From positions 1 through 64,000 of the IMG/VR virus record IMGVR_UViG_3300024259_002152: a DNA stretch of 64,000 bases. One strand, 5' to 3'. The notes below the pieces were generated by a model, which worked only from the letters and a program-made list of their open reading frames with translations, searched no databases and had not been told where the DNA came from. Below are positions 10,587-30,370 of this stretch, one piece after another (the first letter of the stretch is position 1; the number at the start of each line of letters is the position of its first letter). A program made the translations under genes and the position numbers.

Positions 10587-11057
10587 ATGAGATATAGAGT
10601 AAAAAGAGAAGTAAAAGCAATAATCAAGCAATACAAATTAGATTGTTCTGTTGAGGAGTTCGGGGATAAAGTAGATTGGGAAATGGTTTCTTTGTATCAA
10701 AATTGTTCTGAAAATTTTATTGAGGAATACAAGGACAGAGTAGATTGGATATTTATTTCAGTTTATAAAAAGAATCTTTCAGAAGAGTTTATTGAAAAAT
10801 ATGAAGATAGAGTATCTTGGGATTGTATTTCTGGTTGTCAAAAGCTTTCGGAAGATTTTATAAGAAGGTTTAAAAGTAGATTACGTTTGGACCATTTGCT
10901 TTGTAATTGGAATGTAAGCATATCATATCGGTTATGGGAAGAAATGGAAGAGTTAGGACGCAAACGGTTTGATCAGGTGATTGAGTGTTCGACAGGGGGA
11001 GAGGTTCCTTTAGAGTATGACCTTATCGACAATCGTTTTGACATATTAGATTTATAA
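10587..11057 (+). CDS. Tryptophan-repeat protein with RFDILDL tail
   Basis: Three ~23-aa repeats (VDW..IS..QKLSE.FI..Y.D); ends NRFDILDL. Confidence 0.7.
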   Translation: MRYRVKREVKAIIKQYKLDCSVEEFGDKVDWEMVSLYQNCSENFIEEYKDRVDWIFISVYKKNLSEEFIEKYEDRVSWDCISGCQKLSEDFIRRFKSRLRLDHLLCNWNVSISYRLWEEMEELGRKRFDQVIECSTGGEVPLEYDLIDNRFDILDL

Positions 11058-11107
11058 ACACATCTTTTCACTAACTCCTTATTCTATAACTACTTATCAA
11101 TTTTTGT

Positions 11108-11135
11108 TTGAAAGTGAAAGAGGAATCACTATAAT
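11108..11135 (+). promoter_or_regulatory. Sigma70-like (early) promoter
   Basis: TTGAAA-N16-TATAAT; the ~65-bp region is homologous to 10513-10576. Confidence 0.75.
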
Positions 11136-11158
11136 TAGTTTTTATTTAGGAGTAAGTA

Positions 11159-11503
11159 ATGAGTAAGAATAAAGAAGAGATTTTACAAGAGTATATTGAC
11201 TATAGGCGTGTTAATGATGTTAAAGATGAGGTAATAGATAATATATTTTTAAATGAGATGGTATGGTCAGATGGAGATGGGAATGATTGTCATTTATTCA
11301 AAGACCATGGGCGTATAAAAACGTTTTTTGAGAATATTATTTTAGGAAGACATGCAGATGATAATCCTATTAGGGCATGGGGAGGAAAAGGTAATGTATG
11401 TGGGACTATGTATCGAAATGCTGTAATAGTTGATAATATTAATGAAGCAATATTTAACAGGATATATGAAGAATTAGAGAAAAGAGATTTTAGAATAAGA
11501 TAA
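11159..11503 (+). CDS. Hypothetical protein
   Basis: 114 aa with AGGAG RBS. Confidence 0.6.
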   Translation: MSKNKEEILQEYIDYRRVNDVKDEVIDNIFLNEMVWSDGDGNDCHLFKDHGRIKTFFENIILGRHADDNPIRAWGGKGNVCGTMYRNAVIVDNINEAIFNRIYEELEKRDFRIR

Positions 11504-11529
11504 GAGGCATAAGAAATTGGGAGTTAGTT

Positions 11530-11745
11530 ATGAAGGTAAAAGAATTAATAAAAGAGTTAGAGAATAAAGATCCAGAGATGGAGGTATTTCTTTATAATCA
11601 ATCTGATGGTGCTCAAGGTCCATTATCACGAATAGAGATAAAAAAAGAGTATTGGACAGTTGAAAATATTCCCAAGGAAGTTGACCCATATGATGTAGTT
11701 GTATTTGTTTCATGGCAAAAAATATTAGGAATAAATAATGGGTGA
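11530..11745 (+). CDS. Small hypothetical phage protein
   Basis: MKVKELIKELENKDPEMEV start is a common phage small-protein pattern. Confidence 0.6.
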   Translation: MKVKELIKELENKDPEMEVFLYNQSDGAQGPLSRIEIKKEYWTVENIPKEVDPYDVVVFVSWQKILGINNG

Positions 11746-11914
11746 AAAAAGATGGTTAGAGAGATATAAAGAATGGCTTGGGGGAGTTTTTGAAGATCCA
11801 GGAGATAATATTTTATGGCAGATCCAAAGTCTTACAATAGGGGATTTTCAAATAGATAATGATTTTGTTGAGTCGGGGCCAATTAATAGTCGTTTTGAGA
11901 TTTTAGATTTATGA
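11738..11914 (+). CDS. 58-aa protein with RFEILDL tail (not in track)
   Basis: MGEKRWLERYKEWLGG...GPINSRFEILDL*; start overlaps the upstream stop. Confidence 0.7.
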   Translation: MGEKRWLERYKEWLGGVFEDPGDNILWQIQSLTIGDFQIDNDFVESGPINSRFEILDL

Positions 11915-11936
11915 GTTCATATAAGAGAAAGAAATC

Positions 11937-12521
11937 ATGAAAGAATCAGTCAAAAAAGAGATAGAAGAAATAATGGAAAAGTTTAAGAACAAGGACGCAT
12001 TCGTTTTTCCTATTGATAGTATTTTAGAAATGTTTGGTGCTTCTCCTATAAAATTTGAGAATAGGATAGATTGGTCATATCTTTCTCGTTATGGGAATTT
12101 GTCAGAAGATTTTATGAGAGAATTTAAAAATAGAATAGATTGGCATTGGGCATCTGGTCGTCAAAAATTATCTGAAGATTTTATTAGAGAAGTGCAAAAC
12201 AAAGTATATTGGGGAGATATTTTACAATTTCAAAAATTATCTGAATCATTTATTAGGGAGATGAGAGGTAGAATAAATAAAAATGAGGATAGGCTTAAAT
12301 TTGTTCGGGAACATCAAAATATATCGAATGAATTAAGGCAAGAAATAAATATTGGGGAGATATTATCTGCTGAAGATGCTGCTGCTGTTTTTCATTATTC
12401 TCCTCCTCCTCGTAATCCTTATGCCTCATATAAGAAGAAATCATCTTCTTCTAAAATAACAAAAGCAGTTTCTTTTGTCGATGATTTTATTAATGACCGT
12501 TTTGAGATTTTAGATTTATAG
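11937..12521 (+). CDS. Tryptophan-repeat protein with RFEILDL tail
   Basis: Three repeats RIDW...LSEDF.RE..N; ends NDRFEILDL. Confidence 0.7.
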   Translation: MKESVKKEIEEIMEKFKNKDAFVFPIDSILEMFGASPIKFENRIDWSYLSRYGNLSEDFMREFKNRIDWHWASGRQKLSEDFIREVQNKVYWGDILQFQKLSESFIREMRGRINKNEDRLKFVREHQNISNELRQEINIGEILSAEDAAAVFHYSPPPRNPYASYKKKSSSSKITKAVSFVDDFINDRFEILDL

Positions 12522-12531
12522 GAATATAGAT

Positions 12532-12981
12532 TTGGTCAATTTCGTAGAGGACTATTTTAAGAGAAAAAATCGTATTATGGCGCATTTTATTGGACAAGAT
12601 ATAGTTCTTCCTAGTCAAATAGCGGATATATTAGACGTGCCATATACAGATATAATACATTTGGGAAGCGAATTGAAAAATATCACTATTCTTTCGCAGA
12701 TGAAACATTCAGATATTTTGAGTGATATTTATTCTTTGGGATTATCAAAATTAATTTTAGTATACAATTTCTATCCAGAGATGAATTTCTATTTTATAAT
12801 GAAGAATAGAAAAGCTCTTAAAATTAAATATTCAGAATGGAGTTCTTCTTATAATAATAGGGCTAACGGGCATATTTCTCATCGGATTTTTTGCATATTT
12901 GAAAAATTTAAAATAGAAGGGTTAAAAGGCAAGTCCATGAGTGTTTCGGTTCCGAGTCGTTTTGAGATTTTAGATTTATGA
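12532..12981 (+). CDS. Hypothetical protein with RFEILDL tail
   Basis: Ends PSRFEILDL; start codon uncertain (TTG at 12532 or a downstream ATG). Confidence 0.6.
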   Translation: MVNFVEDYFKRKNRIMAHFIGQDIVLPSQIADILDVPYTDIIHLGSELKNITILSQMKHSDILSDIYSLGLSKLILVYNFYPEMNFYFIMKNRKALKIKYSEWSSSYNNRANGHISHRIFCIFEKFKIEGLKGKSMSVSVPSRFEILDL

Positions 12982-13343
12982 GTAGATATTATAGATTAAA
13001 TAAGGACCACAGTGTAGAGTCAATTTCTGATGATGACATACAGGCATGGGCTCAGGATTTTAATGATCATCCTGAGAATAAAATAGTTGAGCATACAGTG
13101 GTAGGAAAAGGAGTAGGGGTATCGACTGTTTTTTTAGGCATAAATCATGCTTTTGATGATTATGCTGATCCTATTTTATTTGAAACTATGGTATTTGGTG
13201 GGGATCATAACGATCATATGGAGAGATATACGACATGGGATGAGGCAGTTAAGGGTCATGAGAAGATAGTAAAAATGTGTGGGGGAAGAATAAAAGAAGA
13301 TGATGAAGTAATCAACAACAGATTTGATATATTAGATTTATAG
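12978..13343 (+). CDS. Hypothetical phage protein with RFDILDL tail
   Basis: Core VSTVFLGINH...LFETMVFGG...RYTTWDEAVKGH; ends NNRFDILDL. Confidence 0.65.
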   Translation: MSRYYRLNKDHSVESISDDDIQAWAQDFNDHPENKIVEHTVVGKGVGVSTVFLGINHAFDDYADPILFETMVFGGDHNDHMERYTTWDEAVKGHEKIVKMCGGRIKEDDEVINNRFDILDL

Positions 13344-13346
13344 AAA

Positions 13347-14498
13347 TTATTCTCTTTTTTCTAATTTACATGCTGCTGAAATAGTAAAGACATCTAGTCC
13401 AGATAGGTCATCAGAGATTATCCATTGTAATCTGTCTTGATTTTCTGGTTTAAGGACTAGAGGTTCTGCCACATAAGAAATTCCAGATAGCCATGATCCA
13501 CCTGCTGGGTTGGTTCCTCCATATGCTGTTAATCTTGTATCTGGAATGGCAAATATATCGGAAAATTTGCGAAAAGAATTTTGGCTTTCTATTTCGTCGC
13601 TTACAATTCTTTGATATACAATTCCATTAGATAGCTCAGCAACTCCGAAGAATGAATTATATGGTATTCCAGGCATGGTGCTATCTGCCAATATGGTTGA
13701 ATAACTATCATCTGCGAAAACAAAAGTAAATGATAAAACATGAAGCCACGTTCCTAGGTCTGGTTCTATACTAAATGTGGCAGATGAAATATCTGATGTT
13801 CCTCCTTTTTCTTGAACATCTATTTCATCGAGAAAATAATCTGGAGGGGAACCTACTCCTATATCTACAGTAGTTATTCTAAAAGCATCGATTGTTTGTG
13901 CTGTAAGAGACATGTCTTCTAGTGGTATAGTAAATTTTTGCCATGTGGTAGTAATTCCTGTATTGACATAATCTCCAATATTTACTGTAGTTCCTACTTG
14001 TGCCCCAGCTCCTGTGTCCCATCCTATTAAATTTGCAGCTTTGGTTCCTGTAGTCGTCCATGCTGAGATTGCTATCCATCCTGTTATAGTTGTGTAATTG
14101 GTTAAATCTAAATTAGAACCTTTCGCTAATTGCATAGTATCATTATTAGATGTTGTTGTTGCATCTATCATAACTGTTCCGCTATGTGGGGAGATAGCTC
14201 CAACTGCTCCGCTATTAAAAACCCATCCTCCTCCTACAATAATAGATGTTGCCCATTCTGTATCTTCATCATATACTGGTTCTGGGGTTCCTCCGAAAAC
14301 TCCAGCTTGTATATTCATATTGATTCCAAAAGTCGGATTGGAGAAATATAAGGCGCTATTTTCAAATCGACGGAGAGGATATGTGGCTACAACTACTGCA
14401 TTTTTATCACAGCAATCGATTATGTCTCCGTCATTAACAGTGACTATATGAGCATTTCTATGATCTCTTGGATCTGTTATGTAGGTATCTATTCCCAT
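13347..14498 (-). CDS. Probable virion/fibre-like protein with a carbohydrate-binding-like beta sandwich
   Basis: WQKFTIPLEDM...IDAFRIT...YFLDEIDV resembles CBM-type domains; last gene of the minus-strand paralogue cluster. Confidence 0.45.
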   Translation of the reverse strand: MGIDTYITDPRDHRNAHIVTVNDGDIIDCCDKNAVVVATYPLRRFENSALYFSNPTFGINMNIQAGVFGGTPEPVYDEDTEWATSIIVGGGWVFNSGAVGAISPHSGTVMIDATTTSNNDTMQLAKGSNLDLTNYTTITGWIAISAWTTTGTKAANLIGWDTGAGAQVGTTVNIGDYVNTGITTTWQKFTIPLEDMSLTAQTIDAFRITTVDIGVGSPPDYFLDEIDVQEKGGTSDISSATFSIEPDLGTWLHVLSFTFVFADDSYSTILADSTMPGIPYNSFFGVAELSNGIVYQRIVSDEIESQNSFRKFSDIFAIPDTRLTAYGGTNPAGGSWLSGISYVAEPLVLKPENQDRLQWIISDDLSGLDVFTISAACKLEKRE

Positions 14499-14500
14499 TT

Positions 14501-15085
14501 TTATCCTACTGTCGTAGAGTGATAATTAAATACCAAAGTTCCATCTATTTCTGTATCAAGATTTGTTGCATATAGTGTAATTAGATTATTTTTAGGGACG
14601 ATAATATCTTGTTCGAAATTGAAATGACTTGTTGTGTCAGAAGAGCTTATATATATTCTTTGTAATTCTACTCCTCCAGATAATCCTGTTATTTCATCTC
14701 CTCCTTTAAACACTCCGTCTGCTGTTTTCCCGCTTCCAAGATTTAGATTGGCAGGACTAATATCGCTTCCTCCTACTTGTGTTCCGCTATCCTTTCCTAT
14801 TACTTTTATTATTTCTGTTTGTCCTGTTCCTCCCAATCTTAGATCGATTCCTTCAAGGACCATTTCTCCTTCATGAGTATTTTGGATATATAGGAAACAA
14901 ACATCTCCAGTTGTATTTGACGGGTCGTCATATGCTGGGGTTTGTTGGAATATTAAATTAAAAGCAAGTCCTTCATCATGATTTATATGGTGTTCTGTTG
15001 ATGATGTTACTGCTATTGTTTTTAATCTATTCTCTGTGCTGACTCCAGCGGTTCTTCCTGATCCTTGTCCATCTTCTATTAGCAT
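14501..15085 (-). CDS. IEDGxGSG-family paralogue 3
   Basis: MLIEDGQGSGRTAGVSTENRLKT; C-terminus FEQDIIVP...EIDGTLVFNYH. Confidence 0.65.
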   Translation of the reverse strand: MLIEDGQGSGRTAGVSTENRLKTIAVTSSTEHHINHDEGLAFNLIFQQTPAYDDPSNTTGDVCFLYIQNTHEGEMVLEGIDLRLGGTGQTEIIKVIGKDSGTQVGGSDISPANLNLGSGKTADGVFKGGDEITGLSGGVELQRIYISSSDTTSHFNFEQDIIVPKNNLITLYATNLDTEIDGTLVFNYHSTTVG

Positions 15086-15101
15086 TTCATTCCCCTTTTA
15101 A

Positions 15102-15653
15102 TTATGAGTTTGTTTGGTGGTAATGGAAAACCAGTGTTCCATCTATTTCTATTCCTCCTGTAACGGCATGGAGGCATAGAGTTTGATTAGGAGGAACTAT
15201 TAAATCTTGTTCGAAATTATAATATGAACTAGTATTGCTGCCTGTTATATAAAATCTTTCAACTGTATTTCCATGAGTAAGTCCAGTGATGCCGTCATCA
15301 ACAATAAATGTTCCATCAGCGTTATTCCCACTTCCCGCATTACAGTTGGCAGGAACGGCAGCAGTTCCAACAGCAGTCCCTGTAGTTTTTAGTTTTACTT
15401 CAATTTGTTCATCACTAGATGTTCTTAACAGTATTCCTTCTACTATTAGATTTACTCCATTACCATTTTTCATATAGACAAAACAGCAGTCGGCAGAAGA
15501 AGGAGTTTTTTGAAACAACAACTGGTATGCTGTTCCTTCGCTCACATTAGAATGGTGTTCTAAAGTTTGTGTTATTGCATGGGTTAATAGTCTATTTTCA
15601 GCATTAACCTCTGCTTTTTTTCCTGATCCTTTCCCATCTTCTATAATAGCCAT
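15102..15653 (-). CDS. IEDGxGSG-family paralogue 2
   Basis: MAIIEDGKGSGKKAEVNAENRLLT; C-terminus FEQDLIVP...EIDGTLVFHYH. Confidence 0.65.
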   Translation of the reverse strand: MAIIEDGKGSGKKAEVNAENRLLTHAITQTLEHHSNVSEGTAYQLLFQKTPSSADCCFVYMKNGNGVNLIVEGILLRTSSDEQIEVKLKTTGTAVGTAAVPANCNAGSGNNADGTFIVDDGITGLTHGNTVERFYITGSNTSSYYNFEQDLIVPPNQTLCLHAVTGGIEIDGTLVFHYHQTNS

Positions 15654-15674
15654 TATTATTTTCCTATAAAGTAT

Positions 15675-16262
15675 TTAATGTTTTGCCATCATCAAAAAAG
15701 ATAATCTAGTATAAATTGTTCCAGAGGTTTGGTTTCCAATATATGACAACTCTAGTGTACCATTTTGTCCAATTACAATAGAACCTTCTTTATTAAATGT
15801 ATTCATATCTCCGTTTGCTTTGGTGTGCCATCTGTCTATTTCTGATTCTGTTCCAGTCAAAGTAGGATTATCTGTGTACACGGTTACTTCTGCTGCATTT
15901 CCACTAGTTGTATTGAGATTTATGGGAATTGTTGTTGTTCCTCCAGAAGAATATGTTCTTCCCAAAGCAATGCTATAATAATTATTAATATTGGGGAAAG
16001 AGGTTCCTCCAGAAGAATCTATTATTTGATGGCGACAATATGTTATAATTAAATCTAGAGTAGAGGAGTCATTAGTAATATGCAGAGGAACTACTGTTCC
16101 GTTAGAGAGGGTTGTTGTTCCTATCACTTGATAAGCTTGTCCTTCATTATGGCTGATCGAATGTTGTATTGATTCTGAAAATGTTCTTGCTAACAAGCGA
16201 TTATCATTATCGATTCCAGCTTTTTTTCCTGAACCTTTTCCATCTTCTATAATAATACCCAT
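15675..16262 (-). CDS. IEDGxGSG-family paralogue 1
   Basis: MGIIIEDGKGSGKKAGIDNDNRLLA. Confidence 0.65.
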   Translation of the reverse strand: MGIIIEDGKGSGKKAGIDNDNRLLARTFSESIQHSISHNEGQAYQVIGTTTLSNGTVVPLHITNDSSTLDLIITYCRHQIIDSSGGTSFPNINNYYSIALGRTYSSGGTTTIPINLNTTSGNAAEVTVYTDNPTLTGTESEIDRWHTKANGDMNTFNKEGSIVIGQNGTLELSYIGNQTSGTIYTRLSFLMMAKH

Positions 16263-16276
16263 AACTTATTTCCTAT

Positions 16277-16504
16277 TTAGGATTTATCTCTATAGTTTCT
16301 AGCATCTTCTTCGTGTAGTTTTGTATTGGTCGTCATTTCTAATTGCAGATTAAATTTTTTCAATTCTTTTAGGATTTTTTGCAAGAGCATCATTTCTTCT
16401 ACAGATACGGTTAGTAGCTCATTATTTTCTTCTCCTGCTATGCCTATTGGTTTAGCAGTTGAGTCTATATCTTTTCCAAATCCTAATACATTCTTATTTG
16501 TCAT
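16277..16504 (-). CDS. Small protein paralogous to the C-terminus of 16528..17097
   Basis: FGKDIDSTAKPIGIAGEENNELLTV vs FGKDPDDEAQPIGISGEETNEVLTV. Confidence 0.65.
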   Translation of the reverse strand: MTNKNVLGFGKDIDSTAKPIGIAGEENNELLTVSVEEMMLLQKILKELKKFNLQLEMTTNTKLHEEDARNYRDKS

Positions 16505-16527
16505 TCTCTTTTTTGAAGAAAAAACCT

Positions 16528-17097
16528 TTAATTATCTTGTGTTGTAACATGAATTTCTTTGTTTTTAATCTCATTTCCTGTAATTATAGCCATTTGAATG
16601 TTGGCTTTTATTAATTCGACATATATTTCTTCTAGGACTGTTGCGACATCTATATCTACTGTTAGAACTTCGTTAGTTTCTTCTCCTGATATACCTATTG
16701 GCTGAGCTTCATCGTCGGGATCTTTTCCGAACAGAAGGATACCATCTGTATCATCTGTTATTTCTTCACCTTCTGATACTTGATTAATTAGTTCATTTTC
16801 CTCGGCAGAAGTGATTGCTTCATCTATTTCATCAGAAGAGATTGGTCCAGGTAGGTCGTTATCGTATATTTTTTCTTTGGAGAAAGAAACTATCCCAGAT
16901 TTAACTAGATCAGTTAGAACAATAGAATGTCCAATTTTTTCTTTTGTATAGTATTGTAGTGCATCTATTGTTTCATTTGGAGAGATAGCAGGTAGAAGGA
17001 GCAGATCTCCTATTGTTATTTTATTGTTGGAATCATTGGTTATAAACCATGATTCTCTATAATTTTCTGCTGTTCTAACATCCATTATTCTTCTCAA
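16528..17097 (-). CDS. Two-module hypothetical protein
   Basis: N-terminus matches 17075..17320 (ITIGDL.LLP.I.P); C-terminus matches 16277..16504. Confidence 0.65.
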   Translation of the reverse strand: MRRIMDVRTAENYRESWFITNDSNNKITIGDLLLLPAISPNETIDALQYYTKEKIGHSIVLTDLVKSGIVSFSKEKIYDNDLPGPISSDEIDEAITSAEENELINQVSEGEEITDDTDGILLFGKDPDDEAQPIGISGEETNEVLTVDIDVATVLEEIYVELIKANIQMAIITGNEIKNKEIHVTTQDN

Positions 17098-17320
17098 TTG
17101 TTTGTTCTTTTTTTTCTATTGTGATTTTTTTATTTTGGACTAAGAACGTGAGCATTTGGGAATCTACTATTTTTTCGCGGGAGTAGAACCTTAGGAGATT
17201 AACTGTTTTATCTGGTTTAATAACTGGCAGTAATGGTAGATCTCCTATGGTAATATTCGTTGGAGTGATATTTTTGGCGAACCACATTTCTTTATTAGAT
17301 TTTTCTATTTCTATTGGCAT
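17075..17320 (-). CDS. Small protein, WxxxNxxxxxITIGDL module
   Basis: WFAKNITPTNITIGDLPLLPVIKP. Confidence 0.6.
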   Translation of the reverse strand: MPIEIEKSNKEMWFAKNITPTNITIGDLPLLPVIKPDKTVNLLRFYSREKIVDSQMLTFLVQNKKITIEKKEQTIEKNNGC

Positions 17321-17321
17321 A

Positions 17322-17840
17322 TTATACTATCGACTTATTAGTATTAATAGTCATATCGCCTCCTACATTATTTGTGATATTGACAGTAGGAGGGTTGAGA
17401 GGATGATCATATTGATGAGGCATGCGATTTCCATATATTGAGCTACGCCAATCAGTAACTCCATCGAGATACTTAGCAGCTTCGAGTGATCTGCTTGGGG
17501 TAACATTTTTTCTATCTATATCTAGATATCTAAGAGATTCTCTTGCCATACCTTGTAGTGTTGGTCCTGGTATATCGTCGTCTTCATATTCAGTTTTTAG
17601 ATCTTCTACTAGATTGACGCATCTATTGAAAGCTTTGACTGCTCTTGTTGATTCATCTTTAGGATATTTCCAAGCTTCTGAGAATAGTGGGAATGAGTGA
17701 ACTTCATTCATAAATACAGCGGTTAGAACTATTCTTTTTTTTGATTCTGTCAGTTGGACTTTACAGGTATAAGCGTCTTTGTCCATTGTGTCATTAAAGT
17801 CTGTTGTGTGTCCCTTGGTCATATATGCCAGTTTTATCAT
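17322..17840 (-). CDS. Hypothetical protein
   Basis: 172 aa; first gene downstream of two minus-strand late-type promoters. Confidence 0.6.
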   Translation of the reverse strand: MIKLAYMTKGHTTDFNDTMDKDAYTCKVQLTESKKRIVLTAVFMNEVHSFPLFSEAWKYPKDESTRAVKAFNRCVNLVEDLKTEYEDDDIPGPTLQGMARESLRYLDIDRKNVTPSRSLEAAKYLDGVTDWRSSIYGNRMPHQYDHPLNPPTVNITNNVGGDMTINTNKSIV

Positions 17841-17920
17841 TTTATTTTTTTGGACAGACCAATAGTAGAAGAAGTTATAACTTTTTCTTTTAGACTTTTA
17901 GTTTTGAACCAATTCATAGT

Positions 17921-20470: not shown

Positions 20471-20505
20471 AAACCACTATTCTTTGTATGAGTAGTGGTT
20501 TTTTT
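20471..20505 (+). terminator. Intrinsic terminator
   Basis: aaaccactattc/gagtagtggttt stem followed by a T run. Confidence 0.7.
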
Positions 20506-20506: not shown

Positions 20507-20534
20507 TTGAAAAGTGAAAAGAAAGTGATATAAT
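20507..20534 (+). promoter_or_regulatory. Sigma70-like (early) promoter
   Basis: TTGAAA-N16-TATAAT with AGTGAAA in the spacer. Confidence 0.7.
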
Positions 20535-21133: not shown

Positions 21134-21148
21134 ATTAAGGAGATAGTT

Positions 21149-21747: not shown

Positions 21748-22257
21748 ATGGCAGAAACAGTAGAATTTGGTAAAGCTTTTAGTCGTCCTCAGCCTAAGGG
21801 TTTGATTCTTTACACTCCTAAAAGTGGTCAGTCAATTACTGTCCGTTTTGTGGGGAAACAACAAGTAATCTATTTTCGTTGGAACAATGAAACTAGAACT
21901 GCTTTTTATTTTGAGAACAAAATAGAAGGATCAATTCGAAGAATCGCTTCTTTTGTTATGGATAGAGATGATGAGCAAATAAAAGTATATCTTTGTCCTA
22001 CTTCGATATTTGAGCAAATGGGCAAATATGGCAAGACTCATGATTTTCATATCACCAGATTTGGTCAGGGAATACAAACTCAATATAAAGTCGAAAGTTT
22101 AGGGGAATCTTTTATTAGTGAGGTGATGGAAGATAGGGTAGAGGTTACTTCAAAAACTTATCCTTTCGCAGATATTTTGATAAAAAAAGTTCAATGGGAG
22201 CTTCTAGATGTAGAATCAGAGCCTATTACTGATAGATTTGATATTTTAGATTTATAA
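21748..22257 (+). CDS. gp32-like ssDNA-binding OB-fold-like protein with RFDILDL tail
   Basis: ITVRFVG...FVMDRDDEQIKVYLCPTSIF...DFHITRFGQGIQTQYKV resembles phage SSB cores (by-eye recognition); ends TDRFDILDL. Confidence 0.5.
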   Translation: MAETVEFGKAFSRPQPKGLILYTPKSGQSITVRFVGKQQVIYFRWNNETRTAFYFENKIEGSIRRIASFVMDRDDEQIKVYLCPTSIFEQMGKYGKTHDFHITRFGQGIQTQYKVESLGESFISEVMEDRVEVTSKTYPFADILIKKVQWELLDVESEPITDRFDILDL

Positions 22258-23194: not shown

Positions 23195-23205
23195 GAATAA
23201 AAAGT

Positions 23206-23241
23206 AGCCACTCTATCTTTTCTAAATAGGGTGGTTTTTTT
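23206..23241 (+). terminator. Intrinsic terminator
   Basis: agccactctat/atagggtggtt stem followed by a T run. Confidence 0.65.
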
Positions 23242-23334
23242 ATGTCCTGAATTTTCATTTGTCATATCTTATTGATTTTAAATGTCAAAAATTGACGATA
23301 TTAGTACGTTATTATTTTTTTAGGAGAAAATATT

Positions 23335-24396: not shown

Positions 24397-24433
24397 TTTT
24401 TAACTTTTAAAATTTTTATTTACTAGGAGTCCT

Positions 24434-25171
24434 ATGTCTAGAAAAAAACGTAATGGGAATGGAAATGGGAACGATAACGGAAACGGGAATAGTAATGGAA
24501 ATGTAATAGAAACAGCCGAAAAAGAAGTAAGAACGATAAAAAGAATAACAGTAACAGCTAGAGGTGAAAATCAAAAAGCACTCTTAAAATCCATTAAAGA
24601 AAATTTAATAACAATTGCAGCAGGACCTCCAGGGTCTGGCAAAACGATGCTGTCAGTTGTTAGTGGTCTTAAAGGGTTTATAGCAGAAAAATATGATAGA
24701 ATGATTTTCACAAGACCATGTGTTGAGGCAAATGGGGAGAATCTGGGATTTCTTCCAGGAGATTTGAATGAAAAAATACATCCTTATATGTATCCTATCT
24801 TTGATTTTCTATCTGATTATTTAACAATAAAACAGATAGAAACATATGTTAAAAATCAATGTTTCTTAACTTTGCCCCTTGCTTTTCAACGGGGAATGAC
24901 ATTTCGTGATGCTTTTGTATTATTAGATGAGGCACAAAATACTACTCCTGAACAGGTTAGAATGTTTTTAACAAGAATTGGGGAGAATTGTAAGGTTGTT
25001 ATTACTGGAGATCCATTGCAGACAGATATTAAAAGTAAGAATGGTTTAGTTGATGCCTGTGAGAGATTGAGAGGAATAGATAGTTTGGGTATTATACAAT
25101 TATCTCATGAGGATATCGTAAGGAACCCAATTGTGAGGCAGATAGAAGAAAGATATTCAGAGGAAAAATAA
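24434..25171 (+). CDS. phoH: PhoH-like ATPase
   Basis: GPPGSGKT, TRPCVE, LGFLPGD, RGMTF, LLDEAQN, TGDPLQTD. Confidence 0.95.
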   Translation: MSRKKRNGNGNGNDNGNGNSNGNVIETAEKEVRTIKRITVTARGENQKALLKSIKENLITIAAGPPGSGKTMLSVVSGLKGFIAEKYDRMIFTRPCVEANGENLGFLPGDLNEKIHPYMYPIFDFLSDYLTIKQIETYVKNQCFLTLPLAFQRGMTFRDAFVLLDEAQNTTPEQVRMFLTRIGENCKVVITGDPLQTDIKSKNGLVDACERLRGIDSLGIIQLSHEDIVRNPIVRQIEERYSEEK

Positions 25172-25242
25172 AGGTTTTTAAGGGTGTAAAGTTGAATATT
25201 TATTTATATATTTAATAGGCAAGTTGCGCTCTTGGAGAAAAT

Positions 25243-28200
25243 ATGTTTAATTTAAAAAAATTAATGAGAATAGTTAAAAAGGGAATATCTTTTGGCAATG
25301 CTTTTAATATTAGCAAGCAAGCGGTGTATAGAGGCACGGGAGAAGACATCGGGCTTACGGAGCAAAAAGAGAAAAATATTTATGAAGAGTCAGATCGCTT
25401 AGAAGAAGATATGGGTACACAATGGTTAGCTCAACAGGGTGTATCTGTTGAACCTTCTGATATTCCTGTTCAAATGGCTCCTGTTCCTGAAGATGTTCCT
25501 GATGTAGTAGAAGATCGAATGAATATGTGGCTAAAAGAGAATTTTAAAGATATTAATAATGAGGAAATTTCTGCTGTAACTGCTGATCCTGGTTTGTATA
25601 GAGAATTAGTATCTCATCCTGAATATGTACAAATTTTATCTGATAAAATAAAAGTTAATCATTCTGGATTAACAGATGCTCAGTCAGATTTATTTGTAGA
25701 GACAATGATGGCTAGGACTCAAGATTTGATGGGATCAATAGAAGAACGAGAAAGGGAGATGGAGGAAGAAGATGCATTAAAAAGTCAACAAACTATAGAG
25801 TTGCCAGAAACGGGTCTGGGTCAAAAACTTTATAATAAAATAGTTAATTTAACTCCAGAGGAGAATCAGGTATTTAAAGACCAGATGATGATGGGGTACA
25901 CTTCTCAAATGCTATCTGATGCTGTTAGTAATCATTTTGATGCGCCTCCAGGAAGTAGAATAGATCAAAGAATGAATTTCTTTTTGAGTAATCCTGTTTT
26001 TTTGGAAGATATATTTCAAGCAGATCCTGATTTTGCACAAAGATATCAGCAATATGACTCAAAATTCCAGAAAATAGATTTATTAAAACAAGAAAAAGGA
26101 GATTTTTTGCTTTCTGTGTTAGATAGGTTGATAGATATTTTAGATCCGTCAGTTGTAAATTGGCTTAAGAGGGGGTTTCCTTATCAGGGGAGAGCAAAAG
26201 GGCAAAACGTAAGAGAACAATCTCAAACAGATATTATGCCAGAGACTGATGACGGAAAAACTTCAGAACTTGGTGGTCTTGATCCGATAGAACAGGCTCC
26301 TCTTGCTACAACTGGCGCCGATGAAGGGGAATCAAGTAAATTTATATCAGATGCTACAAAATACTATTTAACAGACAATATTAATGAGATGAGGGTATTG
26401 AATCAAATTTCTTCTACAGCAATGATGGAAGAAGGAAAAAATAAGTATATGTATAGTTCTGAAGGGTCTCTAGATCAAGCTCGCGCTTTAAAGCAATATG
26501 GAGCAGCAGAAAAATTAAATGCATATTTTCTAGCTGTTGCTAGTCAGTTAAAAGATTTATTCGATGTTAGAGGCAATCCTTTAACTAGAGACATAACTCA
26601 ATTGGTATATAGGAATCCAGAGGGGAAAGCGGTAATGGATGTAGATGTCATGAAAAGAATGATGAATATTGGTGAAAGATCTAGAGAAATGGCAGAGCAA
26701 GAGGGGGAGCAAGAGGGATATAAGGAGGTTTCAGATTATACGAATTATATAGATGAATATAAAAATAGAATAAAATCTGGAGATGAAAAAGAGCCGTTTT
26801 CACCCAAATGGAAAGAAATGATCAATTATAATCTTGTTATGAGATCTTTTGCTGAATTGGGGGAAATAAAAAGTAAGATTCTTGATCTGAAAAAAAGAAA
26901 ACATACAGATCCTGCTTCATTTATAGCTCCATTAACGGGAGGGGGAGGATTGGGTTTATTGGAGCATTTTTCTGGTGTTGATGCCAATGATACAGAAGAA
27001 ACAAAGAACAAAAAGATGTCTGATTTTATTTATATGACTTTAAAACAAGATCCAGCCTTAAAAAAAGATCCTAAGGGTTATTCATTAAAAGCTCCTTTAC
27101 AAGCTTATGAAGACACAAAGGTTATAGATGGGTTGCAAAGAGAAATAGAACAAGATAAAGAGAGTTTATCATTTAAATATAATCAGAATAAACAAGATAG
27201 TATCAGGAGTAAAGAGCAGGAAATTAATAGTATGAGAAGAGAGATGGGGAAAAATTTTAAATCTCTTATTGGCACTTCTTATATTCCTATTTTAGGCCCT
27301 TTAGCTGATCAAGTTGATGAGAAAGTTGTGGACCCGAAGACGGGTGTGCTAAAAAATAAGTTTTCACAAGGCGCTTTGTTCGGTTTTGTAGAATTATTTG
27401 ATCATAATCCTACTAAGATGCAAAATTTTATAGGTTTGGGGCAACAGAAAAATAGATATGATGATCCTCTATACAGAACAAATACTGAATTATATTATAA
27501 AATTAGAGGGACAGAACCTCCAGAACATGTCAAGTCAATGATAGGTGCGTATACGGAAGGGAAGGAAACGGGGGCTCTTAGTAAAGATGAGTGGTATAAA
27601 GATGTATTTGACACGTATAGACAGTTTGACGTTTATCAAAGATCTTATGCAAAACAAAAAGAAAGATTAGATAAGGTTCAAGAAGGACTTAGTTCAAGAA
27701 TTTCTAAAGCTAATGATAAAATAGTTAATAAGATTGAGTCAGGAGAGATAGATTTAGAAAATATTCGAGATCGTATTAAAGACCCTGCTAAACAAATGGA
27801 ATTTGAAGAAAAGATGAACAGTTGGGACAAGGCGTCTGCTTTGCCTTCAGATTATTATGCTGATTATTTTGGGCTAGCAAAAACAGAAAAAATGATATTG
27901 CAAGATAAGAAAAAGATTAAAACTCTTCAACAAGGAGTGCCAAAGGAAGAGAAAAAGAGAAAAACAGAAAGAGCTGGAGAAGGAGAAGGGACTAAAGATT
28001 TGCTTGTCAAATTTAAAGAAAATAAAACAAGACTAGAACAAATATTTGAAGATCGTGGTAAAAAAATTGATTTATCTGCTCTTAAAATAGCGGAGTCTAT
28101 GTACCGAATTGTTCAAAATAGATTATTAAAGTTGTCGGAGATCAAGAAATCGAGTTATAAATTTGCATTTATAAATATAGGTTCAGTTGACGATATTATA

Positions 28201-28251
28201 AAAGAGGTTAAAAGAGATTTTGATGATTTCTTTGATAATTTATTTGAGTGA
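25243..28251 (+). CDS. Large helical charged protein (1002 aa), possibly head-internal
   Basis: Long intact ORF with GGAGA RBS and late-type promoter; E/K/D-rich, no recognised enzyme motif. Confidence 0.6.
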   Translation: MFNLKKLMRIVKKGISFGNAFNISKQAVYRGTGEDIGLTEQKEKNIYEESDRLEEDMGTQWLAQQGVSVEPSDIPVQMAPVPEDVPDVVEDRMNMWLKENFKDINNEEISAVTADPGLYRELVSHPEYVQILSDKIKVNHSGLTDAQSDLFVETMMARTQDLMGSIEEREREMEEEDALKSQQTIELPETGLGQKLYNKIVNLTPEENQVFKDQMMMGYTSQMLSDAVSNHFDAPPGSRIDQRMNFFLSNPVFLEDIFQADPDFAQRYQQYDSKFQKIDLLKQEKGDFLLSVLDRLIDILDPSVVNWLKRGFPYQGRAKGQNVREQSQTDIMPETDDGKTSELGGLDPIEQAPLATTGADEGESSKFISDATKYYLTDNINEMRVLNQISSTAMMEEGKNKYMYSSEGSLDQARALKQYGAAEKLNAYFLAVASQLKDLFDVRGNPLTRDITQLVYRNPEGKAVMDVDVMKRMMNIGERSREMAEQEGEQEGYKEVSDYTNYIDEYKNRIKSGDEKEPFSPKWKEMINYNLVMRSFAELGEIKSKILDLKKRKHTDPASFIAPLTGGGGLGLLEHFSGVDANDTEETKNKKMSDFIYMTLKQDPALKKDPKGYSLKAPLQAYEDTKVIDGLQREIEQDKESLSFKYNQNKQDSIRSKEQEINSMRREMGKNFKSLIGTSYIPILGPLADQVDEKVVDPKTGVLKNKFSQGALFGFVELFDHNPTKMQNFIGLGQQKNRYDDPLYRTNTELYYKIRGTEPPEHVKSMIGAYTEGKETGALSKDEWYKDVFDTYRQFDVYQRSYAKQKERLDKVQEGLSSRISKANDKIVNKIESGEIDLENIRDRIKDPAKQMEFEEKMNSWDKASALPSDYYADYFGLAKTEKMILQDKKKIKTLQQGVPKEEKKRKTERAGEGEGTKDLLVKFKENKTRLEQIFEDRGKKIDLSALKIAESMYRIVQNRLLKLSEIKKSSYKFAFINIGSVDDIIKEVKRDFDDFFDNLFE

Positions 28252-28265
28252 AATAAGGTTCAAAT

Positions 28266-28436
28266 ATGGTTATAACAATAGTATGTTCTCATTGCAGGAA
28301 TCATGATAAGGATCCTCAAATAGAAATCAATTTTAAAGATGGTAAAATATATTACATTTGTCCAGACTGTGAAAAAGAGAGCGTTATTAGTTTAAAAGCA
28401 GATTCTACTCCTTTGCCCAGGATAAGGAGAATGTAG
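28266..28436 (+). CDS. Small zinc-ribbon protein (56 aa, not in track)
   Basis: MVITIVCSHCRNHD...YYICPDCEKES... Confidence 0.55.
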   Translation: MVITIVCSHCRNHDKDPQIEINFKDGKIYYICPDCEKESVISLKADSTPLPRIRRM

Positions 28437-28437
28437 T

Positions 28438-29013
28438 TTGTTTTTTATAGTTAATAAAACAAAAAATACGATAGTCATATCTGATATCGGGGTTACATTA
28501 GGCCCCAGACAAGCAACTGATTTAGATAAAAGTATGGATAGAAGTAAGTCCGATTCATCTAAATTTTTAAAAGCAGCTATTAGAAAAGGGGAAATAAGTG
28601 TTCGTATCAAAGATGGAGTTAAGCCATCTAATGTAGAACCTGCTAAAGTTGAAAATGGTCTTGATAATTTTAAAAAAGAGATGATAGCAGAGATGAAAGA
28701 TTTGTTATCTCAACAATCTCAACCTGTTGCTCAATCAGGTTTAGACAAAAAGGATTTGGCAGACTTTGCACAACAAATAATACAGAATATACCTAAACAA
28801 GAAACAGTTGTTATTCAAGGGCAAGGTCAGGAAATAAAGACCGAGGAAGAAGTTGAGATGGATGAGGGGATTTTAGCAGATATAAGTGCCAGAGCAGTTG
28901 ATCAACTTGTTGAGGGTAGTGATGCTAAATCTCTTAATTATAAAGAAGAAAAGCAAGAAAATACGATATTAAGTAATATCAGTGAACTTGAGGACTTATT
29001 TTTAAATGATTGA
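28438..29013 (+). CDS. Hypothetical protein with an N-terminal module related to 17075..17320
   Basis: FFIVNKTKNTIVISDIG...AAIRKGEI. Confidence 0.55.
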   Translation: MFFIVNKTKNTIVISDIGVTLGPRQATDLDKSMDRSKSDSSKFLKAAIRKGEISVRIKDGVKPSNVEPAKVENGLDNFKKEMIAEMKDLLSQQSQPVAQSGLDKKDLADFAQQIIQNIPKQETVVIQGQGQEIKTEEEVEMDEGILADISARAVDQLVEGSDAKSLNYKEEKQENTILSNISELEDLFLND

Positions 29014-29091
29014 AAAATAGAACAAGGATATTTCCAAGCATAATATAATACTATTATAAAAGGTTAATCTTATTGTATTATGGAGATAGGA

Positions 29092-29259
29092 ATGGTCGAA
29101 AAAACAGGGATAAATTTTAGGATATCGATAAGTCATATTGAGAAATTAAAAAAAATTGCTAGAGAGAAAGCATATAAAGAAGATGTTGAGGTAAGTTATA
29201 TAGATTTAATCAAAGAAGCATATGAAGAGAAATATAGTCTGGAGGTTGATAATGGGTAA
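29092..29259 (+). CDS. Ribbon-helix-helix DNA-binding protein (55 aa, not in track)
   Basis: GINFRISISHIEKLKKIAREK...SYIDLIKEAYEEKY: beta strand plus two helices; overlaps the HNH start. Confidence 0.55.
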   Translation: MVEKTGINFRISISHIEKLKKIAREKAYKEDVEVSYIDLIKEAYEEKYSLEVDNG

Positions 29260-30136
29260 AAAACTGACTTACCAGGAAGTAAAAAAGAGATTTGAAGATG
29301 AGGGGTGTGAGTTGCTCGATGAATATTATTGTAATAGTCAATCTAAAGTAAAATATGTTTGTAATTGCGGAAATGAGTCGATAATACGGCCGCATAGTTT
29401 TTTTAATGGGCATCGTTGTCAGAAATGTGGGTCTCAAAAAGCAGGAAAAAAAGTTAAGAATACATTTAAGTATGTTAAGCAATATTTTGAAAATTGTAGT
29501 TGTAAATTATTAGAAACAACATATATAGATAATAAAACTAGAATGAAGTTTATTTGTAGTTGTGGGAATAAGTCTAAAATTAGTTTTAATAATTTGACAA
29601 ACGGGCAAAGATGTATGAAATGTAGGGGAAGAGAAAAACACACATTCGAATATGTAGTACAGTATTTTAAAAAGGCTAGTTGCAAATTATTGGAAACAAA
29701 ATATTTAAACAATAAAACTAAAATGAAATTTGTTTGTAATTGTGGGAATAAGTCGGAAATAAACTTTCGTTCTTTTCGGCAAGGAACAAGATGTAAAAAA
29801 TGTAATAAGAAAAATAATTCTAATTATAATCCTAATTTAACAGATAAAGATAGAGAAGATAGAAGAAAATCTTTAGGATATAAACAATGGGTTAAAGATG
29901 TTTATAAAAAAGATAACTATACATGTCAAAAGTGTTTTAAGATAGGATATAAATTAAACGCTCATCATATAGAGGGTTTCGCTGAGAATAAAGAATTAAG
30001 AAAAGATATAGATAATGGAATAACTTTTTGCAAAGATTGTCATGATATATTTCATTCGATATATGGCAGGAAGAATATAACTAAAAAACAATTAGATGAT
30101 TTTAAATCTAAACAAGGTACAAAGAAGGTAGGTTAG
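29252..30136 (+). mobile_element. HNH homing endonuclease with N-terminal Cys-repeat (zinc-binding) units
   Basis: Three C..LL...Y.....K..F.C.CG......F......RC.KC repeats, then YTCQKC...LNAHHI...NGITFCKDCHDIFH. Start at 29252 follows GGAGG. Confidence 0.85.
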
Positions 30137-30145
30137 GATAAAATA

Positions 30146-30370
30146 ATGCCATTAACAGATAGTGAAAAAGAATGGATTGTAAGCGAAGCATTAAAGACTG
30201 ATGAGGGAAGAGCAGGATTGTCTGAATCTATGGTGGAGCCCATAAGAGATCATATTGGTCCTTATAGATTCTCTTTTTCTGTGCCCAAAGAAACTAAAAT
30301 ATATAAAATAGAAAAATATGAAGATATTGTTTCAGATATAAGCAATAGATTTAAGATATTGGATTTATAG
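30146..30370 (+). CDS. Small protein with RFKILDL tail
   Basis: MPLTDSEKEWIVSEALKTDEGRAGLSESMVEPIR...ISNRFKILDL. Confidence 0.65.
   Translation: MPLTDSEKEWIVSEALKTDEGRAGLSESMVEPIRDHIGPYRFSFSVPKETKIYKIEKYEDIVSDISNRFKILDL

Follow-up and report, generated by a model that had tools for sequence, protein, structure and literature searches.

Why do seven genes of a phage, encoding proteins with apparently unrelated bodies, all end with the same short peptide? The question arose from a preliminary description of a window of 64,000 nucleotides, i.e. the whole stretch of DNA analysed here, which is part of a 350,866-bp phage contig. It proposed that seven unrelated proteins share an exact C-terminal tag, R-F-[DEK]-I-L-D-L-stop, which would recruit them to a common hub. 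We first re-examined the window. All seven ORFs end exactly as described, and thus the observation is real, but its scale is much larger than was proposed. RF.ILDL occurs seven times in the six-frame translation, always on the + strand and always directly before a stop codon. A degenerate DNA pattern for the tag gave seven matches in the window, against 0.00 expected in 100 dinucleotide shuffles, and no further degenerate member was found there. The features of the locus are collected in the table.

Tagged genes and associated promoters in the window (all on the + strand)
Positions	Feature	Product length	Tag and its positions	Stop	Remarks
10587..11057	Tagged gene 1	156 aa	RFDILDL, 11034-11054	TAA	Tryptophan-repeat family protein
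11738..11914	Tagged gene 2	58 aa	RFEILDL, 11891-11911	TGA	No relatives found
11937..12521	Tagged gene 3	194 aa	RFEILDL, 12498-12518	TAG	Trp-repeat paralogue of gene 1
12532..12981	Tagged gene 4	149 aa from TTG; 134 aa from ATG 12577	RFEILDL, 12958-12978	TGA	ATG 12577 is the more likely start; the stop overlaps the ATG of the next gene (ATGA)
12978..13343	Tagged gene 5	121 aa	RFDILDL, 13320-13340	TAG	Orthologues in related phages
21748..22257	Tagged gene 6	169 aa	RFDILDL, 22234-22254		Predicted beta-barrel related to phage SSB-like proteins; paralogue of the phage's gp32-like protein; tag behind a disordered linker
30146..30370	Tagged gene 7	74 aa	RFKILDL, 30347-30367	TAG	Just upstream of the actin-like gene; adjacency not conserved in relatives
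10549..10576	Sigma-70-like promoter, TTGAAAGTGAAAG-N9-TATAAT				Ahead of gene 1
11108..11135	Second copy of the promoter				Heads the operon 11159-13343, with tagged genes 2-5 and two untagged genes
20507..20534	Third copy of the promoter				Preceded by a terminator-like hairpin (20471-20501); heads the operon containing tagged gene 6

Several details of the preliminary description needed correction. The heptapeptide is the end of a 12-residue motif, [ED]-P-I-x-[SND]-R-F-[ED]-I-L-D-L. Genes 1 and 3 are paralogues of the tryptophan repeat gene family (phrog_3532, E 7e-30 for gene 1), and hence the window holds six body types rather than seven. Five of the genes had been placed downstream of TTGAAA-N16-TATAAT promoters, but the three sites of this type head the operons that hold six of the seven genes, and none was found for gene 7. 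The same extended promoter motif occurs in related phages. As was claimed, codons vary synonymously and all three stops are used, but there is in addition a codon bias, with Leu encoded almost only by TTR and GAG outnumbering GAA.

We next determined how far the tag extends beyond the window. Pattern scans recovered 345 distinct tagged ORFs from related huge-phage contigs and metagenomes, which fall into 153 BLAST-unrelated families. The motif is flush with the stop codon in 305 of 312 cases. None of the carriers came from cellular genomes: all 18 matches in 596 Gb of cellular genomes, scanned with one codon pattern, are spurious. In this group of uncultured giant bacteriophages, about one protein in ten ends with the tag, which has not been described before. 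The carriers are small (median 99 aa, range 37 to 371 aa) and mostly acidic, and only three of 144 family representatives hit Pfam.

The frequency of the motif inside proteins or in other frames, and its conservation in orthologues, had been named beforehand as points that could refute a peptide tag. Neither refuted it. The motif does not appear internally, in other frames, on the other strand or between genes, and identity is 90% in the tag against 45% in the bodies across 27 families. Arg is encoded by both the AGA/AGG and the CGN codon families, including AGA and CGT, which indicates that selection acts on the peptide. The product of gene 6 has eight orthologues at 41-57% identity; the last 12 residues are identical in P0002, R, F, L and D of the tag are invariant, and the other positions show only conservative changes. 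AlphaFold predicted this protein with a pLDDT of 80.6 and its tag below 50, and the model gave 28 BFVD matches at E<=1e-3, including phage SSB and DNA-binding proteins. A BLAST link connects it to the phage's gp32-like protein. The two families modelled have different predicted folds, an OB/SSB-like barrel with helices and an SH3/Tudor-like small barrel, each with the tag behind a flexible or lower-confidence linker.

We then looked for the genomic context of the tag. Eight or nine tagged genes are interspersed with genes for an AAA+ ATPase, DnaB, DnaG and a split Pol III alpha in the replication module. The oldest carriers are replication-module proteins, and the oldest of all is a conserved HExxH protein, encoded about 6 kb downstream of the ATPase gene. 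The motif R-[FYW]-x-hydrophobic-hydrophobic-D-hydrophobic is kept in 120 of 120 homologues of the HExxH protein, from phages of very different G+C, although one to four extra residues are tolerated after it in this family. The HExxH protein has no Pfam or PDB relative, so that its designation as a putative peptidase rests only on invariant H-E-x-x-H and EE residues. The AAA+ protein has 552 residues. Its ATPase domain matches the D2 domain of Cdc48/p97 at E 3e-55, whereas its 260-aa N-domain matches nothing known, and its own C-terminus ends in KDLDL in this clade. Other huge-phage clades with a homologous ATPase carry other shared tails that resemble the terminus of that clade's ATPase: KR[IV]VE[LV] (such as KRIVEL) on four unrelated ORFs with an ATPase ending in TRVVES, ERNID[IL] with GRTLDF, and VLDLE and YIDIEE with NIDIE. 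However, this co-variation is weakly supported, with 13 cases observed against 5.8 expected, partly from trivial patterns.

The most economical reading of these data is that the tag is a genomically encoded, modular docking peptide of about 12 residues, comprising a flexible, often Pro-containing linker, a conserved Ile, a helix-cap residue and then R-F-[ED]-I-L-D-L at the chain end. In this view it has been placed on roughly a tenth of the proteins of this clade, mostly small soluble ones, as an address label read by one common, still unidentified receptor. This receptor is most likely phage-encoded and part of the conserved replication-module gene set. Our preferred candidate is the Cdc48-like ATPase, which would bind the tag and remodel, unfold or hand over the tagged proteins, while the HExxH protein would dock to the same machine through the same tail. 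We consider the docking model about as likely as not, and the identification of the ATPase as the receptor only as a tentative possibility. The ATPase family is far more widespread than the tag, which occurs only where ATPase identity is at least 64%, apart from stray degenerate cases, and thus their co-occurrence is not specific. Moreover, the loci were chosen by the presence of the ATPase gene, so that any conserved neighbour, such as DnaB, the loader-like 280-aa protein or the 368/395-aa protein, is an equally valid candidate. The tag also does not match any known Cdc48-cofactor motif. What the analyses establish is the existence of the tag, its terminal position, modularity and spread, selection at the peptide level, its restriction to this phage clade and its linker-plus-tail architecture. 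In contrast, binding to a single receptor, the phage origin of this receptor and its identity with the ATPase are inferences. The interpretation given in the preliminary description, a modular adaptor system docking on one hub, is therefore partly supported: an AAA+ unfoldase was among the hub classes that it named, but the sliding-clamp version is weakened, and from sequence the tagged proteins may be adaptors carrying cargo or may themselves be the clients.

Other explanations appear less likely. The tag might be a degron that marks take-over proteins for timed destruction by a host protease (ClpXP, ClpCP, Lon, FtsH or HslUV), so that they disappear later in infection, or a mimic of the HslU tail on HslV. 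Its extreme C-terminal position, its hydrophobic end residues and the sigma-70-like promoters of the operons in the window would fit, and its core S-R-F-x-I-L resembles the Escherichia coli HslU terminus, DLSRFIL. However, the tag does not resemble LAA-type ssrA ends, S at position -8 occurs in only about a third of the tags, and relative to HslU there are an inserted acidic residue and two extra residues, which puts the terminal carboxylate out of register. The absence of cellular carriers in the restricted scan and the conservation of the motif on the HExxH protein in phages of very different G+C, and probably different hosts, fit a phage-encoded reader better. This reading is unlikely, and slightly more so are those of a replisome- or clamp-binding tail and of a sorting signal. 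The hydrophobic-D-hydrophobic-hydrophobic-D-hydrophobic pattern at the chain end is of the same general type as clamp- and polymerase-binding peptides, and both the carriers in the replication module and the SSB paralogue are in line with a replisome role. Nevertheless, the C-terminal halves of the phage Pol III alpha end in ...SVDMFEDLF and ...TVDLFA, a classical beta-clamp-type motif and not the tag, the main gp32-like SSB has a different, acidic-aromatic tail, and no clamp gene was identified. Dozens of SH3-like, Trp-repeat and orphan small proteins encoded in tandem arrays far from replication genes are also difficult to envisage as clamp partners. As for sorting into a compartment or the capsid, many unrelated cargos sharing one terminal tag behind a linker is its classic signature, the capsid is presumably HK97-type, as in encapsulins, and the first tagged cluster lies beside the head gene region. 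Yet the promoters of the tagged operons in the window are not seen before the structural genes, tagged genes elsewhere in this genome sit in the replication module, the bodies are mostly acidic, the large replication enzymes are untagged, and the motif, which tolerates extra residues in its oldest family, does not resemble known cargo peptides.

Two further possibilities are very unlikely. The conserved 3' end might act at the nucleotide or translation level, as a ribosome-binding or coupling signal for the next gene, a recombination cassette or a nascent peptide acting at termination. Indeed, 42% of tagged genes overlap the next start as ATGA, GAG makes up 88% of Glu codons in those cases against 64% in the others and 32% genome-wide, Leu is almost never CTN, CGT is enriched, and three tags of the window share an identical 22-nt stretch. 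However, 58% of the tags have no overlapping downstream start, the two Arg codon families differ at up to three positions, D and E interchange, replacements are conservative (F to W, Y, L or M; L to I or M), and the motif persists with different codons in phages of 48-58% G+C. Alternatively, all carriers might belong to one fast-evolving family whose C-terminal element is the best-conserved part of one fold. Small phage proteins do diverge beyond BLAST recognition, one family alone accounts for 58 of 340 carriers, and tandem paralogue arrays are common. Against this stand the number of BLAST families, the different predicted folds, to which the helical Trp-repeat adds a third body type, the size range of the carriers, and the untagged paralogue of the SSB-like carrier with its different tail.

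Finally, we compared the tag with related systems. The docking motifs of Cdc48/p97 cofactors (VIM, VBM, SHP box), the Wss1/SPRTN metalloprotease-Cdc48 partnership and the SspB C-terminal XB peptide on ClpX offer a parallel, as many proteins carry a short linear peptide, often behind a flexible linker, that docks to the N-domain of a ring AAA+ unfoldase, and a zinc metalloprotease is among the docked partners. Here, a Cdc48-D2-like ATPase and a tagged HExxH protein lie in one conserved module, but the tag sequence matches none of those motifs, the phage ATPase has a single ATPase ring and an unrelated N-domain, and the HExxH protein is not detectably SprT/WLM. The T4 gp45-clamp-binding tails of gp43, gp33 and gp55 and the bacterial beta-clamp motifs QL[SD]LF/QLxLxL are likewise short acidic-hydrophobic peptides at the extreme C-terminus of unrelated proteins, some of them replication proteins, that bind one hub, but the number and type of the carriers found here are far beyond any clamp interactome in phages. 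The SSB tail (DDDIPF) and the acidic tails of T7 gp2.5/gp4 mediate protein contacts from a flexible C-terminus on an OB-fold ssDNA-binding-like protein, an architecture that gene 6 shares, but with reversed polarity, since here many proteins carry one tail rather than one tail contacting many partners. The HslU tail and HbYX motifs dock ATPases and activators into peptidase rings by inserting a terminal hydrophobic peptide into a pocket; no HslV, proteasome or ClpP-like ring was seen in the regions sampled. The ssrA tag, encapsulin cargo-loading peptides, the T4 capsid-targeting sequence and the peroxisomal PTS1 also assign many unrelated proteins to a common fate, but ssrA is added by tmRNA whereas this tag is gene-encoded, the T4 sequence is N-terminal and cleaved, and cargo peptides are co-expressed with the shell, whereas in the window the tagged genes lie behind sigma-70-like promoters and elsewhere in the replication module. 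Lastly, tblastn searches linked genes 1 and 3 to the tryptophan repeat gene family of Bacillus, Listeria and Clostridium jumbo phages (BpSp, LPJP1, phage G, c-st), at 36-43% identity and with many copies per phage. The BpSp members also share a conserved C-terminus, but its sequence (...K[IL]KTLFKLKE[ILV]) is different and was seen only within that one family.

We confirmed the observation made in the preliminary description that seven ORFs share a C-terminal end: each of them exists as described and ends in RF[DEK]ILDL directly before a stop codon. In the six-frame translation of the 64-kb window the heptapeptide occurs seven times, always on the + strand and always followed by a stop. A degenerate nucleotide pattern for the tag gave 7 matches against 0.00 expected in 100 dinucleotide-preserving shuffles, and no further degenerate copy was found in the window. 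The seven tagged genes are among about 75 non-overlapping ORFs of at least 50 aa in the window.

We next determined how widespread the tag is. An exact-pattern scan of IMG/VR placed the window in a 350,866-bp viral contig, IMGVR_UViG_3300024259_002152, and showed that other huge viral contigs of 547,943, 297,710, 460,978 and 64,827 bp carry the same tag. The spacing of five tags is reproduced in one related locus (L005). A metagenome scan added at least 120 loci. Together these pieces (768 kb) hold 345 distinct tagged ORFs, which is a lower bound since the scans used one codon pattern. BLAST comparison of the bodies without their last 12 residues groups 340 of them into 153 families, 103 of which are singletons. 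RF[EDK]ILDL occurs 312 times in six frames of this DNA and is flush with the stop in 305 cases. Six of the other seven run on for only 2-7 residues to the next stop, as after a mutated stop codon, while the seventh, in locus L001, reads on further. At least 25 tagged genes lie in the ~110 kb sampled from the window's own genome, about a third of which was readable. The loci were collected through the tag itself or through a neighbouring AAA gene (see below), which biases these counts and the neighbour statistics.

In contrast, the same pattern gave 18 hits in 596 Gb of bacterial and archaeal genomes, all in stop-to-stop segments of 7-48 residues that are mostly low-complexity GATTTTA repeats, so none is genuine and host mimicry was rejected; given the single codon pattern, this absence is a weak negative. 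Among cultured phages, a megablast search with 21 kb and a tblastn search with gene 21748 against 50,697 phage records found no relative, and a 36-nt tag query gave only chance-level single hits, without any multi-copy match.

The conserved unit is longer than the heptapeptide of the preliminary description and reads [ED]-P-I-x-[SNDT]-R-F-[ED]-I-L-D-L. In the 345 distinct tags, collected with a search that required R at -7 and D at -2, Ile at -10 is present in 269, F at -6 in 324 and S/N/D/T, i.e. helix-cap-like residues, at -8 in 323. In an earlier set of 56 proteins, collected with a looser pattern ([RK] at -7, [DE] at -2), R and D were nevertheless invariant. Arg is coded by AGA (177), CGT (112), AGG (38) and CGA (11), two codon families that cannot interconvert by a single synonymous step. 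D and E alternate at -5, and replacements are conservative. Within 27 families, mean pairwise identity is 0.45 in the body and 0.90 in the last seven residues. Eight orthologues of gene 21748 at 41-57% identity keep the tag almost unchanged, and one of them (P0002, 57% identical in the alignment) keeps the last 12 residues identical. Thus, selection acts on the peptide, and neither frequent occurrence inside proteins or in other frames nor loss in orthologues, which had been named beforehand as grounds for rejection, was observed.

There is also a secondary nucleotide-level signal. Leu is almost only TTR, with CTN making up about 3% of tag Leu codons against 32% genome-wide, GAG outnumbers GAA, the reverse of genome usage, and CGT is enriched. 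In 42% of tagged genes the end overlaps the next start as ATGA, and GAG reaches 88% in those genes against 64% in the others. This fits a weak ribosome-binding role for the downstream gene and/or spread of the tag as a DNA cassette.

AlphaFold models were built for two families. That of gene 21748 (mean pLDDT 80.6) shows a beta-barrel (residues 29-120) plus helices, a linker without regular structure from about 145 to 163 where confidence falls, and a five-residue terminal helix with pLDDT below 50. That of the largest family (58 members of about 100 aa, starting MKYKVGDKV.IKTWE; mean pLDDT 91.5) shows a small SH3/Tudor-like barrel, a linker and a terminal helix whose confidence drops to about 69. 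PDB fold searches were not significant for either model. Against predicted viral structures in BFVD, gene 21748 matches 28 proteins at E<=1e-3 (E 1e-7 to 1e-3), several of them named SSB, DNA-binding protein or T5-type D11, but its PHROG hit is only weak. BLAST links its family (E about 1e-7) to a gp32-like protein of the replication module (Pfam gp32, E 7.7e-4), whose own tail is acidic-aromatic. The 'SSB-like' label of the preliminary description therefore appears reasonable, although it rests on predicted structures and weak similarities, and the tagged protein is a paralogue rather than the main SSB.

The carriers are small, with a median of 99 aa and a maximum of 371; 59% have acidic bodies, and few have a membrane-like segment. 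Pfam and PHROG searches with 56 and then 144 representatives were almost empty, with 3 Pfam hits among the 144. One tagged protein hits Pfam FAF (plant 'Fantastic Four' domain) at E 1.4e-8, and a 371-aa protein is presumably the member that hits DUF4116 at E 2.5e-51. Window genes 10587 and 11937 belong to the tryptophan repeat gene family, which is found in many copies in Bacillus, Listeria and Clostridium jumbo phages (tblastn E 1e-12 to 3e-15 against BpSp, LPJP1, phage G and c-st; phrog_3532 E 7e-30). Five tandem members of this family in the cultured Bacillus phage vB_BpuM-BpSp share a conserved C-terminus of their own, ...K[IL]KTLFKLKE[ILV]-stop.

Tagged genes often form tandem arrays, of up to eight in a row in locus L015. 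In the window they lie in operons headed by an extended promoter-like motif, TTGAAA(A)GTGAAAG-N9-10-TATAAT, which is conserved across related huge phages but was not found before the structural genes. Elsewhere in this genome, eight or nine tagged genes are interspersed with AAA, DnaB, DnaG and split Pol III alpha genes in the replication module. Sigma-70-like promoters and AGGAG ribosome sites, together with bacterial-type replication and translation genes (Pol III alpha, DnaB, DnaG, RecA, IF3), point to a bacterial host, perhaps a Firmicute. One protein (P0006) of the 547,943-bp contig, IMGVR_UViG_3300033145_003233, is listed at NCBI under a 'Candidatus Asgardarchaeia archaeon' MAG. However, close relatives of this contig carry tail, capsid-region and the same bacterial-type replication and translation genes, and the archaeal label is probably a binning artefact.

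One replication-module carrier of 263 aa has invariant H-E-x-x-H and EEFAYG motifs and is hence a putative zinc peptidase, although no Pfam or PDB relative was found. All 120 listed database homologues keep HExxH, and all end in R-[FYW]-x-[ILMFV]-[LMI]-D-[LFI] or a close variant of it (a few lack the Arg or replace the Asp), either flush or followed by 1-4 residues. This family is therefore the oldest carrier, and strict flushness is a feature of the focal clade. About 6 kb upstream of it lies a 552-aa AAA protein whose residues 265-483 match the Cdc48/p97 D2 domain at E 3e-55 and Pfam AAA at 2.5e-29. Its 260-aa N-domain has no PDB or Pfam relative and is unrelated by sequence to the Cdc48 N-domain, and the protein ends in ...AKDLDL. 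The other conserved replication-module proteins are DnaB, the gp32-like protein, a 280-aa loader-like protein and a 368/395-aa protein.

To investigate a possible association between this AAA protein and the tag, we collected 39 loci around its homologues. RFEILDL-type tags occur only where AAA identity is at least 64%, with single degenerate copies at 47-48%. A 209-kb phage of 58% G+C (locus L193, IMGVR_UViG_3300034196_000067), whose AAA is 36% identical and ends in ...TRVVES, has four unrelated ORFs that end in KR[IV]VE[LV]-stop with varied codons, a second, different shared tail in another huge-phage clade; a scan with a narrow codon pattern found no further copies of it. In the 460,978-bp phage (L197, IMGVR_UViG_3300037247_001786), the AAA (..NIDIE), the HExxH protein (..VLDLE) and two other ORFs (..YIDIEE, ..YIDLER) share a hydrophobic-D-hydrophobic-E ending. 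In a further locus (L170), two ORFs end in ERNID[IL] and the AAA ends in GRTLDF. These endings may reflect co-variation of the tails with the AAA terminus, but a crude permutation test was only weakly positive (13 observed against 5.8 expected), and we treat this as a lead and not as evidence.

We then compared the tag with known terminal peptides. Functionally, it resembles hub-docking or fate-deciding peptides such as clamp and SSB tails, Cdc48 and ClpX cofactor motifs, HslU/HbYX tails, ssrA and cargo peptides, but it meets the sequence definition of none of these. It does not fit the clamp-binding patterns QL[SD]LF, QLxLxL or the T4-type SLDFL-like tail, as it has no Gln and no terminal aromatic residue. 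No clamp gene was identified, and a 368-aa candidate has no PDB or Pfam match. The tag also differs from SSB-type tails, in which an acidic run ends in an aromatic residue as in DDDIPF: the gp32-like protein ends in DDFANNW or DSDWENNF, whereas its tagged paralogue ends in RFDILDL. Unlike ssrA, which is added by tmRNA and ends in LAA or a similar sequence, the tag is encoded in each gene, and no tmRNA or tRNA gene is present in the window. Relative to the E. coli HslU end, DLSRFIL, the tag reads SRF-E-IL-DL, so that the hydrophobic residues are in a different register to the terminal carboxylate, and it lacks the penultimate Tyr of Hb-Y-X ends. A Cdc48-type AAA ATPase is encoded by the same genome, but the tag does not fit the VIM (R-x5-AA-x2-R), VBM or SHP motifs of Cdc48/p97 cofactors, which bind the N-domain. 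Encapsulin cargo peptides, whose genes are expressed with the shell genes, and the T4 capsid-targeting sequence, which is N-terminal and cleaved, are unrelated in sequence; in the window the tagged genes lie behind sigma-70-like promoters absent from the structural genes, and elsewhere in this genome they lie in the replication module. In contrast, the hydrophobic-x-hydrophobic carboxyl end of PDZ class II ligands is matched, with L-D-L-COOH in 332 of 345 tags. Such ligands also depend strictly on the terminal carboxylate and need a PDZ protein to read them; 1-4 extra residues are tolerated in the oldest carrier family, and no PDZ domain is among 25 of the 61 Pfam families of 102 neighbouring ORFs.

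The analysis establishes a single conserved peptide in terminal position on many unrelated small bodies, predicted to follow a flexible linker, its restriction to one phage clade, and its ancient presence on a conserved replication-module protein across phages of different G+C. We infer, with moderate confidence, that it is a docking tag read by one conserved, phage-encoded receptor; the receptor has not been identified, and its binding to the tag, the peptidase activity of the HExxH protein and all other functional statements are inferences. The AAA ATPase is our favoured but tentative candidate, because ring AAA+ unfoldases are classic readers of short terminal peptides, a peptidase-like partner carries the tag, and the terminal sequences of AAA and clients hint at co-variation. 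The interpretation put forward in the preliminary description, a modular adaptor system recruited to a common hub, is thus partly supported, since the tagged proteins might equally be substrates or regulators.

Other explanations considered are a host-protease degron, including mimicry of the HslU tail, a clamp or replisome tail, a sorting signal, a nucleotide-level element and simple common descent. The strongest single piece of evidence against the clamp reading is that the Pol III alpha C-terminal parts of two tag-rich phages end in SVDMFEDLF and TVDLFA rather than in the tag. Docking to actin filaments in a ParM/ParR-like manner was also envisaged, as a tagged gene lies upstream of a Volactin-like actin gene, but this tagged gene is absent in relatives although the actin itself is very conserved (88-89% identity), and the idea was dropped. 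A more speculative possibility, unlikely on present evidence although not excluded by it, is that these huge phages run their own tag-directed protein-handling system. In this view, a gene-encoded address on about a tenth of the phage proteome would be read by the Cdc48-like AAA+ machine working with a separately encoded HExxH peptidase that docks through the same tail, in effect a split FtsH-like protease with a private degron or adaptor code, and different phage clades would have evolved different codes (RFEILDL, KRIVEL, hydrophobic-D-hydrophobic-E).

Short terminal tags that give many unrelated proteins a common fate, such as signal peptides, PTS1, ssrA, and clamp and SSB tails, are central to cell biology. 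In the literature available to us we found no gene-encoded C-terminal tag on about 10% of a phage's proteins, with clade-specific variants, and nothing relevant on the motif, on C-terminal motifs of jumbo or huge phages or on Cdc48 in phages; no proteome-wide C-terminal tag is known to have been described for a bacteriophage. As one 12-residue peptide labels at least 345 distinct proteins in 153 families of otherwise uncharacterised phage proteins, it gives an experimental handle on hundreds of orphan genes at once: one pull-down with the peptide should identify the reader, and the tag can then be used to sort, deplete or localise proteins. If the reader is the phage's own AAA+ ATPase, this would be a virus-encoded addressing system for protein remodelling or degradation, and the different tails in other huge-phage clades suggest that the principle is general.

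Positions of features in the window and in related loci (L numbers denote collected loci)
Locus	Position	Strand	Feature
Window	4684-5493; 7341-8447; 29222-30136; 35547-36452		Subtilisin-type (Peptidase_S8) protease gene in the putative head-gene region; a LAGLIDADG gene and two HNH homing-endonuclease genes scattered among conserved genes
Window	10549-10576; 11108-11135; 20507-20534		Extended promoter-like motif heading tagged operons
L010	145; 4109		Same promoter-like motif
L015	6118		Same promoter-like motif
L017	445		Same promoter-like motif
L009	6654		Same promoter-like motif
Window	13347-17840	-	Cluster of paralogous genes
Window	14501-15085; 15102-15653; 15675-16262	-	Three genes of this cluster sharing an N-terminus of the form EDGKGSGKKAG..NRL
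Window	13347-14498	-	Gene of this cluster used for the family search
Window	30539-31597		Actin-like gene (Pfam Volactin, E 7e-61)
L007	5677-6465		Tagged HExxH protein, putative zinc peptidase
L114	2313-3968		AAA protein with Cdc48/p97 D2-like ATPase domain
L162	10001-11656		AAA protein of the replication module
L162	17369-18157		HExxH protein
L193	6039-6665; 6668-7342; 11876-13861; 19674-20708		Four ORFs (208, 224, 661 and 344 aa) ending in KR[IV]VE[LV]
L007; L018; L019	9455-10867; 5519-7498 and 9479-10891; 5233-7077		Loci of split Pol III alpha
L018	7994-8326; 9479-10891		Two ORFs with the same end
L014	3348-4460		Tagged protein, presumed DUF4116 member
L038	2292-2816		Acb1 / 2',5' RNA ligase-like protein, just upstream of the window
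L041 (Bacillus phage vB_BpuM-BpSp)	89400-92078		Five tandem tryptophan-repeat family proteins

Other features of these genomes were observed in the course of this work. Pol III alpha is split into two genes separated by several small ORFs, and in some relatives it is interrupted by intein or LAGLIDADG elements. The two ORFs of L018 that share an end both finish in ...ELEDDLGGVDRY, as if an exon end had been duplicated by an insertion. The source genome and its relatives encode counter-defence proteins, namely the Acb1 / 2',5' RNA ligase-like protein and a Tad5 (Thoeris inhibitor) homologue. The actin-like gene lies within a conserved block next to tail genes, and its product is among the most conserved proteins in comparisons with related contigs. 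Finally, the cluster of paralogous genes on the opposite strand of the window is conserved in L009, and a search with one of its genes returned no family match.
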